Both the position numbers and the translations under genes were made by a program. The notes under the pieces were generated by a model. That model worked only from the letters and a program-made list of their open reading frames with translations, was not told where the DNA came from and ran no database searches. A stretch of DNA of 63,652 nt, the filler included, from Reticulomyxa filosa (taxonomy: Eukaryota > Protista > Foraminifera), in NCBI GenBank assembly GCA_000512085.1. It is 22 parts of 22 records of this genome, joined end to end, with 100 filler letters (N's around TTAATTAATTAA, not from the genome) between each part and the next. Parts side by side here need not be neighbours in the genome. Positions count along the whole stretch, not along the records: positions 9,646 to 11,267 come from ASPP01010654.1; 21 more parts are not named here. One strand, 5' to 3'. Below are positions 1,528-11,267 of this stretch, in pieces. The stretch's first letter is position 1. Each line of letters opens with the position of its first letter.

Positions 1528-3201
1528 ATGCGATGGGAACAACTTTCAAAAGTTAGCCTCCGTTTTTATATTTCTTACAAAAAGTGTTTTTGACAATAAC
1601 ATGTTTTGACTCCAGGACAATCAGTCAAACTCCACCTCGACTGGCGCTGAACGAACATTTTCAACACACCCCAAAGACAAAGTACCAACGTGTTTTGAAA
1701 GCAATACGGACCGAGAAGGTTTGCACAGTGTTTGCATCACAAATTTACTTAAAGATAAATCTCTATTGTTTGTCTATAATGTATAGAATTGTTAGAATGG
1801 ATCGAAAACGTTCTTCAATTGTCACAAACTGAAAACAAAAGATTAGAAAAAGAAGTAAGTGTGAATAATTTTTTTTGGAAAAAAGCATTTAAGTTTTTCC
1901 AAATGCAATATGAGACATAAAAAAAATAAAAAGAATGCGGAATGGAAAATGACACATGAGCTGAAATCTTTAAAGTACAGCAAAGAACTAAGTGAAATGA
2001 AAGAGGAATTGGAAGAATTAAAAAGAACACACAAAATACTCCAACAAACATTACAAACGGAACGTCACAAGTTGAAAGAATATCAATACCTGTCGGACAA
2101 ACAAACCAAAGATTACATTTCACAATCGAATCAATATATCAAAGACTTGGAAGCGCTCTCACAACAGCTGAGTGAAGCAAAGGAGCTAAATAATCAATAC
2201 AAAGTTCAAATCGATGAATACAACAATGAAAATTTGCAATTAAAACAACAAGCAAACGAAATGAAAGAGCATTTCGATGTTATTCATGCAAGCATTGACC
2301 AGATAGTGCAACAAGAAAAAGACAGTGACAACACAAATGCCGACAATCAATCTCTTGATGCCGGGAATGTCTTTGACAAAATCAAGTATTTAGAGGTATT
2401 TATGCATCAATCAATTCAGACAAATCAAGAATGCAAACATTATAAAGGTTTAGTTGTCCACTTTTTTTGAAACACCCCTTTTTAACGCTTACTACAAAAT
2501 TTATTGGTTATGACATAATGATTAAACTTACAGAATTGCTGAAGTGCATCCCTGAAAAACTGTTTCAAATAAACGAAGAACAAAGCATTTTTTACGAAGA
2601 AGCAATGAACCATTTAACTGTGTATACAACCAAAATGGAGCATCTGTATGCTCAAAATGACACATTGCAAACGTTTACGCATAACTCGAAGCAGCATACT
2701 TTTCAGTTGGAAACTGAAAATAAAAAATTAGCTCAAGATTTGTCACTTTTGCAGAAGCGTTACGACGAAGATATAAACAATTTGCAGCACGAATTGGAGG
2801 AGATTATGACCAAATTAGCTCCTAAAGATTTTAGTTTATCTGAATTGCTTCAGCATTTGTCTCACAATATCCACGCCATGCAAACTCAAACACAACTAAT
2901 GGAATACAGATGGTATCACTTGCGACAAACCCCCGCAAAAGAATGGATCGATCAAATCGAAAATGATATGCAAAGTGAAAACAAACGCATCAACGTAAAA
3001 ATTTGTGAAGTCTTTGCACAATAAAACTTTTAATTACTTTCTAAAATATAGTTGATGCTTGCTCGTAAATAGATTTCCGAATCAAATCTCCAAGGAAAAC
3101 AACGTTCAAACTTTGTTATAAATACCAATGAAAAAGCAGGAAAAATAAGAATTGAATCAACAGCGAAGAACGAGGCAACTGCAGATAATCCAGAACTGTG
3201 A
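1528..3201 (+). CDS. Multi-exon coiled-coil protein of unknown function
   Basis: Long E/K/Q/L heptad-rich ORFs 1910-2470 and 2467-3024 separated by GT-AG introns; stop TGA at 3199-3201; start uncertain. Confidence 0.6.
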
Positions 3202-4582
3202 TCTATCGAAAGAAATGGAGTTTTTTCAACTTTTTCAGTTGAAAGTGGATGATGTAATTGTTTTGAAAAAAATGTCTAAAGGATATTATTAACAGGCAAT
3301 ATATAAAATTTTCGTTGAAACATTGCCTTCGTGTTCATGTTAAAAAAATTTAATCAACACATTTTAATTGTAGTTAGTATAATTATGTTTAATTTTTCAA
3401 ACATTAAACTTGTCAATTTGTCACAAAGGATTTGATTATGTTGTTATTCTGTCATGTAAAAGATGTAGTCACAAAGCTAGAACTCATTTTTTTTTGAAAG
3501 GTTAACAAAAACAAGAAAACTTCAAAACATGAGGAATAGTTGAATTTTCGGCAGAGAACATTGTTTTCAGCTTGTAGTTAAATGATAGATTGACAAATGA
3601 TTACAATACAAAGATTTGTCATGCCTTTGGCTTCCACACGTCAGAGGTACGACGTTTAACTTTTTCAAAAAGACCTAAAAATATCGCAAATTAGTGCTTG
3701 CCACTCCGATTTTCTTTTCGTATATCATGTTTTAGTTTTAGATATAATAACAAATATTTTTCTTTTTTGTGTATGTGTTGTATAAATTATATAAACATGA
3801 CAAAAACTTGAAATCTTTTGGAATGATAACCATTATACTCTATTTTTCATGTATAATTTAAACTGCTGATATACTGTCTTGTGGTCATCCTAACTTGTCT
3901 GAAGACAATAAGAGAGTTGAATAGGTCATCATTTTGTTTGGATGCAATTTGCAAAAAAAAAATAGCACTTTCTTGGAATAGATCTCTAAACAAAATATTA
4001 AGCACACTTTGGATTAGATTTAAATTCATGTTTCCTTTGATTAAAATGAGATAATAAAAATGTTAACTCAAATTTCATTTAAAAGATTTGAAGTTAGATA
4101 TTGATTCATGTGAAAAAACAACTAAATCGGTTCCGGATTTTGTGTAAAGATGCTTTAAGCTTTTGAAAAGTTCGCAACAGCTTCATAAAAGAAGCCAAAG
4201 GTTAAATTCGAACAACACAATAAAATTTCAATAATTGCTATGATGGCTTCTAATAAATCGCTCTGTTTTTTGCTCAAATAAATATAACATTTAAAAGAAG
4301 GTTTTGTTGCAATTGCATCCTCCACAAATCGAGAGTCCTTTGTGACAATCTAGAAAAAGCAAAAAAAAAGATGCAAATGATTGTGTCTTGAGTTTGTATG
4401 AAAGTTAATGATGTAAACAATTTGAAATATTTTCATTACTAAAAAGTTTTTTTCTATTACAATTATACTATGAGATTACGATAATTTTTTAGGTAAATTT
4501 AAGTTTTAACGGAAAAGAGTAAAACAGAGCGTTACTAAATTTGTCAAAAAAATTTTAAGGTGATCCAGGCTTGTAAAACTTA

Positions 4583-6082
4583 ATGTTTTCCCGAGCGTGG
4601 ACTTACTGGGGTAACTCAGAGACTCAGCCAACAGAAGAAACGAGCAATGAACGAGAAAAACCGACAGAAGATCAGACAAACTCAGTGGAAAAAAAGACTA
4701 GTTTAACCGACGAAACACCATTGCATCCCGCAACAACAGCTACAACAAGTGATCATCCATATCCACTCTCTCAAGGTCCTGGGGACCACGTATATTCAAT
4801 TTCAGCACCATTGTTGAAAGATTTGAAGAACAGTGACAATAAAGATGCAACTGACGAAAAACATAAAGACTTTAAGCAATCATTGCATTACACCTTTGAT
4901 CCAATCCGACATCACTATGACAACAATGCAAAAGATGTATCAGCAACTAAAGTAGTGGTATGGCATTCCGCTCCGTTGAGTTTGTCTTTGTCTGAAGAAG
5001 TAACAAATACTGACATCTCTTCATCTCTTGCACAGATGCAAATTACAGGTATACTTTATGTTATGTATCTATTTTTTCCCTCCCTCTCCCCCTTTTTTTT
5101 TTTTTTTTTATAAAAAAAATTCTATATGCTTACACAGAAAAGAAAACAACAGACAAAGAAGAGAATAATAACAATATAATGAGCCAGTATTTGGATACGT
5201 TGACACTTGAGTCAAATGAAAAAGAAGAATTAATGAAATTGCATGAGTGGATTAAAAGTGATGCATTAAGCAACAAATTGAAAGACGAACTGTGCTTTGC
5301 TGATATTATATTATCTTATTTCAGCAGCTTCAGTCCAAATAATCCCGACGCTGTTGGCTGTTGGAAACGATGGGTGATGTATCGTAATGACTCGCCTTTG
5401 AAAGATGTCAACTTTTCCCGTGTTCGGGAATTCTTTGACAGTGGCGTATATGGAGTTGGTTATGACAAAGAAAACAGACCAATACTTATTATTAACTCCA
5501 AACATTATAAAGACTCGTTTGGACCTGAAATAACAGCAAAAGCAACCATTTTATTTGTTACAAGTGTTTTATGGAATATCCGCAATAATTCCTATGAATT
5601 TGATGCCCTGAGAAAGGGATTTTGTATATGTAAGTTATTTTTAAAAAAAAAAAATAAAAAAGAAATCTCAAACTATATATAAAATACTTATTCAGATTTG
5701 GATTTATCACATTACAGCATAAGTATGTTGGCATGGAATGTACTCCAAGCCTGTAAGGCAGCTATGATTGCTGTTCCATTTCAATTGGGAGATATCTACT
5801 GTATCAATACACCAACTTTTATTTATGTCTTACGTCAAATTGCGGCAAAAGTTTTGTACTTTATGTGTTATTAAACATTATATTCTTTAATATGTTTTTA
5901 CTTTTGAAATAAACCAGATAATCGTACCCCACGCAATGGAAAAAATCAAAATTGTACCAAGTATTGCTGAATATTTTGAAAAATATGGAGTTAAAGATAA
6001 AACTCCAATTCAAAACGGAGGCACATGGGAAATTACTACTACACAATGGATGATTGATCGTGGTTTCATTGAAAATGAATAA
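4583..6082 (+). CDS. CRAL-TRIO (Sec14-like) lipid-binding protein
   Basis: Exons give GYDKENRPILII, DLSHYSI, VPFQLGDIYCINTPTFIYVL, MEKIKIV and PIQNGGT, the typical CRAL-TRIO motif order; canonical splice sites; stop TAA at 6080-6082. Confidence 0.85.
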
Positions 6083-8095
6083 AAAAACATATGACGGTGA
6101 TTCATTTGTAATTGAATCTTTCTTCACAATTTTCAATTTTTCAGCTAGATACCTTTTTTTTTTTCTTTTTGTTGATTTACTATCTGATCAACTTCACATT
6201 AATGTGACAATATTATTTCCTTATTCCTTGGATTATCCTTTTTTTATTCTTTCTTAATTTCAGTAAAAAAAGGAAATAAAATTGACAACAAAATGTATTA
6301 CAATACACAATTTGAAAAATTAAAGTTTGCAGTCAAAATGCTGTTTTATCACTGCAATACAATTTTCTTGGATTGATTATAAACACGAAAAAACTCACTG
6401 ATGATGATACTCAGCTTGTGAGGGGAGGGGGGGAGGTCTTTAACTTTTTTGCTGATTGTTTGCAGCATTGTTATCACCCACTTTTTTAAAAAAAATTTTT
6501 ATGACTTCTTCCAAAAGTTTATTCAAGCTCATCCAATGACAACAGTTTTGAAGAGTTTATTTCTGATTCCAACGTCGTTTTTTTGCTAATTTTCCTTCTT
6601 TGTTCGGGAAAAACAAGTATTCTTCTTTTTTTTTCTCTCATAGTGATAGAACTTATTCTTTTTGGCAATTTTAAAAAATTATTATTTTAATTTATTGCTA
6701 TATATAAAAAAATAGAACGGTAAAGAGTTTTTGAAAACATAATTTGATATGAATCATACAATATAATCAAAATACAAACTTATTTCAGTATATAACACAG
6801 CCACAATTATTAAGGCAAAAAACAAACAAAAAAAATTGGAAAGCTAAACATATATACACAAAAAGTAATTTAATGAGCAAAAAAAAAAATAAAACAAAAA
6901 GAAAATAACACTACTTGCTTTCATTGTTAAATTTAAAACTAATAAATCTATAAAGACTTCTTTATTTTTTTCCAAATTGTACTTTGTGCTACTTCCACTT
7001 AAGACAATATTTTCATTTTCATCTTCTTAAAAATTTCATCAATTTCAATACTTTATTCAGACTACAAACTTGTTAGCAAAAATCAACTAAATCTTTAACA
7101 ACGACTTACCAAAGACAATGCTAGATGCAGTACAAACTCAATTAAATTCACTTACATCCATATCAATTATATCATTTCTATTCAATACAAAATAAACAAA
7201 ATTATGAATTATATATTAAATATATTACAAAAAGCGACAATTATACAAATATATACTTAATTGTTTAATTAGTCTTGCTAAGTACAATGAAATAACAAAT
7301 GATAATTCAAATAACAGGACTTTGTTCTATGATGTATGTATTATTTTTGTAAAAATGTGTACATTAAAAAAAAACATTACTGATTGTCATATTGGGATGC
7401 GCAATATACAAATAACATGCATCCAACCTTGTCTTTTCTTGTACTGCACCATTATACACATTCATCACTACAACACAACAAACATACACTTCACACTCAG
7501 TATATCACTCCTGATCAGAAAGGAAAAAAAATAAAAGTAAAGTGGAAAAAAGATATAGTTAAGTGAGAAAAAATATATAGCTATAGTTGGAGAAAAGATA
7601 TAGTTATAATGATGAAAAAGGAAAACTAAAGGGATATTGAAAAAAGATAAAAATAATTTCAAAGCATATCGCTTTGAGTTCCACTGGATATAACAATCAC
7701 TTTGTATGTTATTCAAATATTTTATTTACTTTTTTTTTGTTTGATATGATATACTTATTATTTCATCCGATGACGCAATAATGTCTATGTCAATCTAATC
7801 TAATGAAACAGATTTACAATAAACTATGACCTCGACAGTGTTGATTTCCATAACTGTGTTAGATTTGACCTCCATTTGGTCAATATACATGAAGTCTGTT
7901 GTTGTTGATTTCTATTTTCTTTCATCAATGTCTATCGGATTCAATTGATCAACATATATCTGATTATGTCAATCATCGTCACATTCTTCAACAACATAAA
8001 AACTTCAATGTCCAAATCTATTTTGTATTTGTGCTTGTATGTGTACACATAATACACACAAACTCTTTTTTTTTATTGTAATCTTTTTTTTTATT

Positions 8096-9645: not shown

Positions 9646-11267
9646 TTGATGTTGATGTTGATGTTGATGTTGTTCAATTTTCTTTTCTTCCACTTCTTCT
9701 TTTTCTAAAAATTTCATTACATGCTGATAACAATCATACGTATCTTGCTGTTTGTTGTCATCATCACCATCAACATATGGATAATCATTGGCTTGTAATG
9801 GAATATATGTTTCAAGAGCTTGCGACATAGCTATATCTTCTTCTAACTCCTGTTTTCTTGATTCTTGTAACAGTAATGCAAAATCAGCACAGCTTGCTGG
9901 ATTTTTATCTCCAATGATATATTTTTTATAGTATTCATATAACACCACATAAATAGCTTTCCCTTTTACCTTTTCTGGAGCAAATTTGCAAAGTTGTTCA
10001 TATACAAATTGTGCTATCTTCAACGGCAGATTACTGTCAATTTCTGTCTCTGTTTTTTTAGAGAGCTGTGGTGGCTTCAATATCCCAATGTCCAAATGTG
10101 ATTTGTAACGATTTGCCAGTTTTTGTATTCCTTTGTCGTCAATCCATTCACAAATAATGTCATTAATTTTGGTTAATGTTTCATCACTTACCTGTTTTAA
10201 TTCTTCTTCAGCCTCCAAATTATTGGGCCTCCATGCTCTGATATGTTCATAGAACAAATGACTTAATTTTGGGTTTTCAATTACTGTATATCCTTCCAAT
10301 GTTGTAAAGTTTTTTAATGTTGCCTGCATTTCCACATAGACATCATGCTTAGGGACATACAATTTAATGTTATGAAAACGATGATGCGTTTTGGATTGCC
10401 TTTCAAAGAAATCCTTATCTTCGGACACAATCAAGTTAAATTGCTCTGCTTTTTTCATCACCGCAACAGCAGTCTGCAATTTCGTCGCATTGTCACATAG
10501 AATTGTGAATCTTCCAATATCAAACACTTGATTATAATCGCCATTGTAATCACATTCAATCTTTTCCAATAATCTTACTTTATCTTTCACCTTGGGTGGT
10601 TTTACCACTGTTATTAAATATCTCTGCAATTCCGCCACTAAGTTTAATATCTCATTGCTCGTCATTGCACTTTCACTCCTTGTTATTAAATCTTCCAAAC
10701 CTGTCGCATGCTGTCGAATTTTTTTTGATTTCAACTCATAAGATAACCCCGGTTTGATTGCATAAAAGCATTGATAATGGTTATCTTTCACAGGCTCCAA
10801 ACTATCACTCGCGCAAATGGAGTGCTCTGAATTGAAAAACAGAGCCTTTACAACCGACGTCACTGTTGACTGTGCACAATCTGGACAGCGATACAAAGTC
10901 TTATTAGAATGAAATGAAATATCCCCAAATCCAAGATTCACCCATACCAGAAGTCTGGCCTTTGCTGCTAAACAGTCTTGATTCACGCAATAGCCTTGCA
11001 CATTTATCCCGGGCCTAGTTTCCCCAATCTCCACCCTCTCATCTTCTTTTTCTAATTTTTGTTCGCTTTCTCTTCCATCTTTTTCCAATTCTTTTATCCG
11101 TTTTTTTTTTTTTTTTTTTTTTGGAATCAAACAAAAGATAATATACAAAAGTAAATTAAATACAATCACATGCAATCTATGTGTAATGGAAGGAATACCT
11201 GCTCATTTTTATATTCTGGCTCTTGTGTTTTGTTATCCGCACTCTCAACTTGAACATCACCCTTTTT
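9646..11267 (-). CDS. Partial gene: Cys-rich Zn-ribbon plus RelA/SpoT-like nucleotidyltransferase domain; probable N-terminal region of a NACHT/STAND protein
   Basis: About 480 open codons after an intron (~11093-11199). GINVQGYCVNQDC...CPDC, then KVKDKVRLLEK, DYNGDYNQVFDIGRFTI, EDKDFF, HHRFHNIKL, VEMQ, HLFYEHIR. Runs off both contig ends. Confidence 0.7.

Follow-up and report, generated by a model that had tools for sequence, protein, structure and literature searches.

Introduction

Can the pyrophosphate-transfer chemistry of a bacterial alarmone toxin be the output of an immune-type receptor in a eukaryote? The question is raised by positions 9646–11267 of the window (the whole stretch of 63,652 nucleotides that was analysed), which are an entire 1,622-bp contig (ASPP01010654.1) of the freshwater foraminifer Reticulomyxa filosa (assembly GCA_000512085.1) and carry the partial gene RFI_14668. 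To our knowledge, RelA/SpoT homologue (RSH) enzymes are regarded as stress-signalling enzymes of bacteria and plastids or as bacterial toxins, and among immune-type receptors of eukaryotes they have been reported only from a small number of uncharacterised NOD-like receptors (NLRs) of fungi. The contig was found to encode the N-terminal ~500 residues of a protein of the STAND (signal transduction ATPase with numerous domains)/NLR type, composed of an all-β domain with four cysteines, an RSH domain similar to the toxin Tas1/Apk1 and a helical linker domain.

The single long open frame of the contig is located on the minus strand, as are all features of the contig given below, and comprises 485 codons without a stop (9646–11100), running off the contig at position 9646. 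Its product is 100% identical to the database entry [quoted passage not shown] (P0001). Residues are numbered along this translation, and all searches were performed with this main exon alone.

An RSH synthetase-like domain of the Tas1/Apk1 type

The RSH synthetase-like nucleotidyltransferase domain spans residues 133–319 (10144–10704). Submitted as a single sequence, this copy matched Pfam RelA_SpoT (PF04607) at E 0.002 with 18.6–18.7 bits (gathering threshold 27) and Tas1 in the PDB marginally, at E 0.33, and an NCBIfam scan of the protein gave zero matches. At the level of the family, PF04607 matched 18 of 27 relatives at E values up to 0.01 (best 3e-6), with the paralogue P0195 clearing the threshold at 30.2 bits, and a family profile run against PDB sequences returned Tas1, a toxin that synthesises (p)ppApp, as the one protein of known structure (E 0.0013). 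An exhaustive profile search over 1.8 billion representatives led to remote metagenomic domains, several of them with PF04607 above or near threshold. When the family alignment (A3) was compared with twelve remote Tas1-like domains (A5) using hhalign, a probability of 99.6% and an E value of 5.9e-25 were obtained; A5 in turn matched Tas1 in the PDB at 5.6e-25 and, at E values from 1e-11 to 4e-4, YwaC (1e-11), RelP (9e-8), RelSeq (7e-7), RelA and RelQ.

Structure prediction gave the same result. The AlphaFold model, with a mean predicted local distance difference test score (pLDDT) of 80, has a central mixed β-sheet flanked by helices, as in the nucleotidyltransferase-type fold of RSH synthetases, and Foldseek placed Tas1 first (E 9.3e-6), followed within the top ten by an exported small alarmone synthetase (SAS) of Streptomyces, Rel, RelP and RelQ. 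A nucleotidyltransferase fold was the outcome on which the original prediction had staked itself beforehand. Because profile and transitive sequence matches and predicted-fold matches agree, membership of the domain in the RSH synthetase superfamily, on its Tas1/Apk1-like side, is established.

Donor site and acceptor loop

RSH synthetase domains carry, in this order, RxKxxxSxxxK, a catalytic D..R, RxKD/ExDD, GY(Q/R)SxH, E(I/V)Q and HxxY. Six strings, SEDKDFF among them, had been read by eye as counterparts of these motifs within 10225–10625, and all six were found, in the stated order, between 10237 and 10593. Residue roles were assigned from the structures of FaRel2, RelP and Tas1 (PMC11782079). 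The helix binding the donor ATP phosphates, K170-x-K172-xxx-R176-xxx-K180 (KVKDKVRLLEK, residues 170–180; 10561–10593), was placed by HMMER alignments to Tas1 and matches RxKxxxSxxxK, with Arg at the usual Ser position, as in Tas1; its counterparts in FaRel2 are R64, K66, S70 and K74 (PMC11782079). K172, R176 and K180 are kept in 45–48 of about 51 paralogues. On the next strand, D-I-G-R (10510–10521) aligns with D-L-A-R of Tas1 and provides the catalytic Asp194, a Mg2+ ligand, and Arg197, both invariant in A3 and A5, the Asp being present in 47 of 49 paralogues.

The ExQ motif E257-M-Q259 on strand β5 (10324–10332) is the counterpart of FaRel2 E145/Q147, which reads the donor adenine and supports catalysis (PMC11782079); E257 and Q259 are invariant in A5 and kept in 43–47 paralogues. 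The C-terminal helix of the domain carries H281-x-x-Y284 (H-L-F-Y, 10249–10260), which is matched to H-K-Y-Y in the alignment with Tas1 and whose Tyr is invariant in A5 (H in 52 and Y in 50 of 53 paralogues). All residues of an RSH donor ATP site (K170/K172/R176/K180, D194/R197 and E257/Q259) are thus present, and K172, R176, K180, D194, R197, E257 and Q259 are also kept in an environmental relative of 35% identity. The expectation that the metal-binding Asp and Glu had been preserved was borne out by this residue conservation.

The acceptor side is different. The acceptor ("G") loop, T238-H239-H240-R241-F242-H243 (10372–10389), was located by hhalign column pairing, in which H239 pairs with Gly, H240 with Tyr and R241 with Arg, so that T-H-H-R-F-H stands against G-Y-R-D of the Tas1-like domains. 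The replacement of GY by HH, originally seen by eye, thus held in the profile alignment. Neither this copy nor the paralogues have the Gly-Tyr loop of RSH enzymes: the first His is invariant, the pair being His-His in this copy and 43 paralogues, His-Tyr in 8 and His-Phe in 1, and Gly is never present. An aromatic His, Tyr or Phe always occupies the stacking position in the paralogues, and the exchange of H240 for Tyr (8 paralogues) or Phe (1 paralogue) fits a base-stacking role. In the RxKD acceptor motif, Ser takes the place of Arg. Residues 234–241, around the acceptor loop, have low pLDDT. Judged from these substitutions, the His-His loop may point to an acceptor different from those of known enzymes.

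In a codon comparison with four R. filosa paralogue loci, in which synonymous divergence (dS) was saturated (1.4–2.6; undefined for the environmental locus L002) and the ratio of nonsynonymous to synonymous divergence (dN/dS) consequently serves to rank domains only, the lowest values were obtained for the RSH domain (0.014–0.08), followed by the β domain (0.06–0.15) and the linker (0.08–0.22). The saturation of synonymous change indicates that the duplicates are old. All dN/dS values lie far below 1; with the RSH domain lowest, they speak against its being in decay or having a structural role only.

A large NLR-type family in R. filosa

Beside RFI_14668, about 58 R. filosa paralogues were matched, and the family totals more than 100 R. 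filosa gene models, some of them split by annotation. The domain order of the family is β domain, RSH-like enzyme, helical linker, NACHT and WD40, i.e. the tripartite NLR layout of N-terminal effector, NTPase and C-terminal repeats. Pfam detected NACHT in 15 of 27 close relatives (best E 1e-11), with 30.2 bits in P0063 and 39.6 bits in P0195 against a threshold of 26.7. In most of the NACHT-bearing relatives WD40 comes next, and it too scored above its Pfam threshold. The RSH-like region led to 52 long R. filosa proteins (about 950–2,000 aa); NACHT is present in nearly all of them and multiple WD40 repeats in most. In P0064 (1,734 aa) and P0062 (1,368 aa) the RSH-like region is followed by 14 and 9 WD40 repeats, respectively, and the precomputed Pfam lists of both include NACHT.

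The copy on the contig ends where this architecture continues. The helical linker domain (residues 320–431, 9808–10143; AlphaFold helices 322–431, pLDDT about 85–95), which joins the enzyme to the NACHT module, is kept in the paralogues and, weakly, in the metagenomic ankyrin-RSH-linker-NACHT protein P0115. It is followed by the pre-NACHT segment LETYIPLQAN...CYQH (residues 428–475, 9676–9819), delimited by the sequences of P0004, P0013 and P0018; BLASTP of P0115 against P0195 showed the same segment and then the P-loop. In the paralogues, the Walker A motif GKSGSGKS lies about 28 residues after C-Y-Q-H; the contig stops 29 residues after C-Y-Q-H, which is where the NACHT NTPase starts in more than 60 paralogues. 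A (CAACAT)n repeat encoding E-Q-(H-Q)4 is located at this edge (9646–9675), where the paralogues have a non-repetitive acidic stretch, and likely caused the assembly to break off at the expected start of the P-loop. Two suggestions of the original prediction, that the gene is of NLR type and that its downstream segment precedes a NACHT P-loop, are accordingly supported by the paralogues, with the contig ending before the NACHT module in this copy.

No secretion-targeting or antitoxin domain of the kind found in toxSAS or secreted Apk/Tas proteins was detected in this protein by Pfam or NCBIfam, and the genes adjoining paralogue loci encode more NLR parts or are unrelated. A literature search, with the R. 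filosa genome paper outside its scope, returned no paper tying Reticulomyxa, Foraminifera or Rhizaria to NACHT or NLR proteins.

Two features of the gene models should be mentioned. P0195 (RFI_08856, 1,027 aa) contains two RSH-like domains in tandem (about residues 166–260 and 548–636), followed by a single NACHT; either the domain was duplicated or the gene model is a merger. At the loci L005 (6001–11128) and L006 (6001–11122), models of 477 and 641 aa are followed 55–70 nt downstream on the same strand by models of 1,177 and 1,026 aa; these pairs are probably single NLR genes split by annotation.

Relatives outside R. filosa

Among non-foraminiferal proteins, P0115 is the closest to the whole RSH-linker-NACHT module: it has a T-H-Y-R acceptor loop and is 27% identical over 512 residues (E 2e-37). 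Its gene (L003, ERZ25070786 ctg75484l, 2745–6257) is located on a compact, intron-less contig and adjoins a YhgA-like transposase, a neighbour that makes a bacterial origin probable; from this context one may suspect that the module was transferred in fused form and that its carrier was bacterial. No relative was found when 185,579 bacterial and archaeal species genomes were scanned with the RSH-NACHT module alignment and with P0115.

Environmental relatives with the β domain and an RSH-like layout were found at L002 (ENA ERZ27276640) and L004 (JGI 3300030741), 35% and 55% identical to this copy, respectively, so the family exists beyond the sequenced R. filosa strain. In P0051 the helical linker is present as well, and the contig of P0041 ends about 50 residues past the RSH domain.

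Two further proteins were noted. P0121 (3,127 aa, on a 235-kb contig) carries, in this order, a core domain of extracellular contractile injection systems (eCIS), a remote Tas1-like RSH domain and a calpain protease, and P0131 (1,109 aa) combines DUF4781 with a C-terminal RelA_SpoT domain. Both look like polymorphic toxins.

The four-cysteine β domain and the 5′ end of the gene

Upstream of the enzyme, residues 24–127 (10720–11031) form an all-β domain with four invariant cysteines (C38, C43, C72 and C75), which is presumably zinc-binding. Its fold was predicted with confidence (pLDDT 92), and no convincing counterpart was found among solved structures. Proteins bearing related β domains (P0166, P0144, P0171, P0169 and P0177) were found in eukaryotes only; in P0166 the domain directly follows ubiquitin (with its ...TGG end), elsewhere a trypsin-like protease, and by predicted shape it also occurs in rotifer ADP-ribosyltransferase fusions and in ubiquitin-RING proteins of Mucoromycota. 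The domain is apparently a separate, undescribed eukaryotic module.

About 110–150 residues upstream of the β domain, a "GGMQ" motif, followed by some 45 conserved residues of helical character, was seen in the R. filosa paralogues P0087, P0089, P0090, P0096, P0107 and P0180, a region not present on this contig. This region resembles a ubiquitin end with a UBA/CUE-like domain; naming it a UBA domain has no backing from Pfam, and the likeness is kept as a lead.

At the 5′ end, a partial exon of 23 codons (11199–11267), truncated by the contig edge at 11267, encodes an acidic, lysine-rich linker. It closes in phase 0 with a GT immediately after it, and its translation is similar to the linker upstream of the β domain in the paralogue P0089. 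A probable AT-rich intron (11101–11198) follows, with its GT donor at 11198–11197 and a run of 22 A (11101–11122) at its 3′ end; an equivalent AT-rich intron at the paralogue locus L001 (2047–2152) ends in a poly-A run and G. No in-phase AG acceptor was found near the A22 run, the closest in-phase AG being 11039–11038. The AG at 11092–11091 and others beside the run were rejected as out of phase, and use of 11039–11038 would remove a stretch kept in the paralogues. The prediction of an intron-containing gene stands in substance, by virtue of the donor at 11198 after the 23-codon exon.

The public models P0001 and P0004 translate through the AT-rich intron, which gives spurious hydrophobic and poly-Lys stretches; the 26-nt "intron" annotated by NCBI together with this read-through looks like a gene-caller artefact. 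The G+C content of the contig is about 35%, similar to that at other R. filosa loci.

Proposed mechanism and alternative explanations

Taken as a whole, RFI_14668 is read as an NLR with a Tas1-like pyrophosphokinase effector, most likely with a (p)ppApp-type output in defence or allorecognition, and a probability of roughly 0.6 is assigned to this reading. The WD40 part would sense a trigger and the NACHT module would oligomerise, which would release or bring together the N-terminal enzyme. The enzyme would then move the β-γ pyrophosphate of ATP to the 3′-OH of a purine acceptor, most likely an adenine nucleotide as in Tas1, the closest relative, after which its product is deduced by analogy. 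A (p)ppApp-like product together with the drain on ATP could lead to ATP depletion or translation arrest, and, as a defence or allorecognition output, the part of the syncytial network that is affected would stop growing or die. RelA domains are effectors in bacterial conflict systems (PMC7159879), and bacterial NACHT proteins defend against phage (bioRxiv 10.1101/2022.07.19.500537).

Several points weigh against this reading. The direct PF04607 score is below the gathering threshold (18.6 vs 27 bits); the base-stacking Tyr and the preceding Gly are exchanged for His-His and the RxKD Arg for Ser, so that, to go by the residues, binding of the nucleotide acceptor may be altered or lost. The NACHT of this copy itself lies off the contig. 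At the 5′ end, no canonical acceptor close to the A run restores the reading frame, and this copy could be mis-assembled or defective there. The saturation of dS makes the dN/dS values rough, and a role in immunity or cell death is argued by analogy with fungal, animal, plant and bacterial NLRs.

Within the same architecture, the enzyme might instead be a tRNA pyrophosphokinase like CapRel, FaRel2 and PhRel2, which would pyrophosphorylate the 3′ CCA and shut down translation; this is considered unlikely, the nearest relative by profile and fold being the (p)ppApp synthetase Tas1. About as unlikely is a non-lethal second messenger, i.e. an alarmone-like nucleotide serving stress physiology or a separate downstream effector. 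Signalling is what canonical RSH enzymes do, a role in signalling to other effectors has been put forward for nucleotide-generating domains fused to STAND and vWA systems (PMC7159879), and the unusual, invariant His-His loop could dictate a product dedicated to signalling; yet the closest relatives, Tas1 and the exported SAS, are toxins acting by mass action (PMC12691689), no partner receptor or hydrolase was identified here, and more than 100 paralogues with one conserved enzyme fit the scheme of many sensors and one execution output better.

The sub-threshold Pfam score and the loss of the acceptor-loop Gly-Tyr could also be taken to indicate a pseudoenzyme, a nucleotide-binding or scaffolding module regulating the NACHT switch without catalysis, and conflict systems are known to include nucleotide-enzyme domains that lack activity (PMC7159879). 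This is judged very unlikely in view of the retention of all donor-site and metal residues in about 50 old paralogues and in the environmental relative of 35% identity, of the constraint on the RSH domain, the strongest in the protein, and of the aromatic residue always held at the stacking position. Bacterial contamination of the assembly, which would make the gene an ordinary bacterial toxSAS or NACHT defence gene, could draw on P0115, the nearest non-foraminiferal relative, with its intron-less metagenomic contig and neighbouring YhgA-like transposase; it is hardly credible in the face of more than 100 paralogues that sit on R. filosa contigs, up to 27 kb long and of equal G+C (about 34%), AT-rich introns in the 5′ region here and in L001, the fusion to a β domain restricted to eukaryotes, and the lack of a relative among the bacterial and archaeal species genomes scanned.

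The reading as an NLR with a Tas1-like effector can be extended, tentatively and at odds well short of even: the more than 100 NLR-type receptors would share a toxin-type pyrophosphokinase arm taken together with NACHT from bacteria, the His-His loop would give a new product or substrate, and the β domain would be a new adaptor linking effectors to ubiquitin-type control.

Implications

The combination of an RSH domain with an NLR is now seen in a distant eukaryotic supergroup, in which it forms the dominant output of a very large family of receptors and is strongly conserved. If the proposed mechanism is true, "alarmone" chemistry is a death or defence signal in a eukaryote. Three questions become testable: whether (p)ppApp-like nucleotides or tRNA pyrophosphorylation are used for execution in eukaryotic cell-autonomous defence, whether NACHT oligomerisation is a switch for an RSH-type enzyme, and whether effector-NACHT modules are exchanged between bacteria and protists as units. 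For annotation, attention is drawn to some 100 R. filosa genes whose present labels say no more than "NACHT", "NB-ARC" or "WD-40 repeat protein", and to a new domain rich in cysteine.

Comparison with known systems

The best match by profile and fold is Tas1/Apk1, the (p)ppApp synthetase toxin of Pseudomonas aeruginosa type VI secretion (PDB 6OX6). The two share a donor helix of the form K-xxx-R-xxx-K, in which Arg occupies the Ser position, a short strand motif D-x-x-R, the ExQ and HxxY motifs and, beyond the core, a small helical extension. Tas1 is secreted by bacteria as a toxin and has an immunity protein, whereas the domain described here is a cytoplasmic part of a eukaryotic STAND protein; the acceptor loop is T-H-H-R-F-H here and G-Y-S-G in Tas1, and identity is only about 19%. 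With RelQ/SAS1, RelP/SAS2 and the long Rel/RelA/SpoT enzymes, the R. filosa domain appears, from its residues and predicted model, to share the catalytic fold and the donor-site residues; these enzymes make (p)ppGpp for the stringent response and have a G-Y acceptor loop and RxKD, in which the R. filosa domain differs. Among CapRel(SJ46) and other fused toxSAS defence proteins (PDB 7ZTB, 9ERV), CapRel is small, bacterial, regulated by a pseudo-zinc-finger domain and directed at tRNA, and, unlike the R. filosa family, has no NTPase switch and no repeats.

Bacterial NACHT (bNACHT) proteins, P0115 and the R. filosa family share a tripartite STAND layout with an N-terminal enzymatic effector (bioRxiv 10.1101/2022.07.19.500537). 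P0115 differs from the R. filosa family in its ankyrin repeats in front and in having neither the four-cysteine β domain nor Pfam-detected WD40 repeats. The closest parallel in layout is provided by the fungal RelA_SpoT-NACHT-WD40 NLRs (Dyrka et al. 2014, PMC4986451), to whose N-terminal domains the original prediction had appealed and which are indeed documented there. They have the same domain order as the R. filosa family and likewise belong to filamentous or syncytial hosts with expanded, variable NLR repertoires. In fungi, RelA_SpoT accounts for less than 1% of NLR N-terminal annotations (PMC4986451); in R. filosa, a member of another supergroup (Rhizaria, Foraminifera), one family comprises more than 100 gene models and has the four-cysteine β domain in addition. 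The kind of protein is thus known from fungi, and what is new here is the supergroup, the very large expansion, the extra domain, whose fold has no clear solved counterpart, and the distinct acceptor loop.

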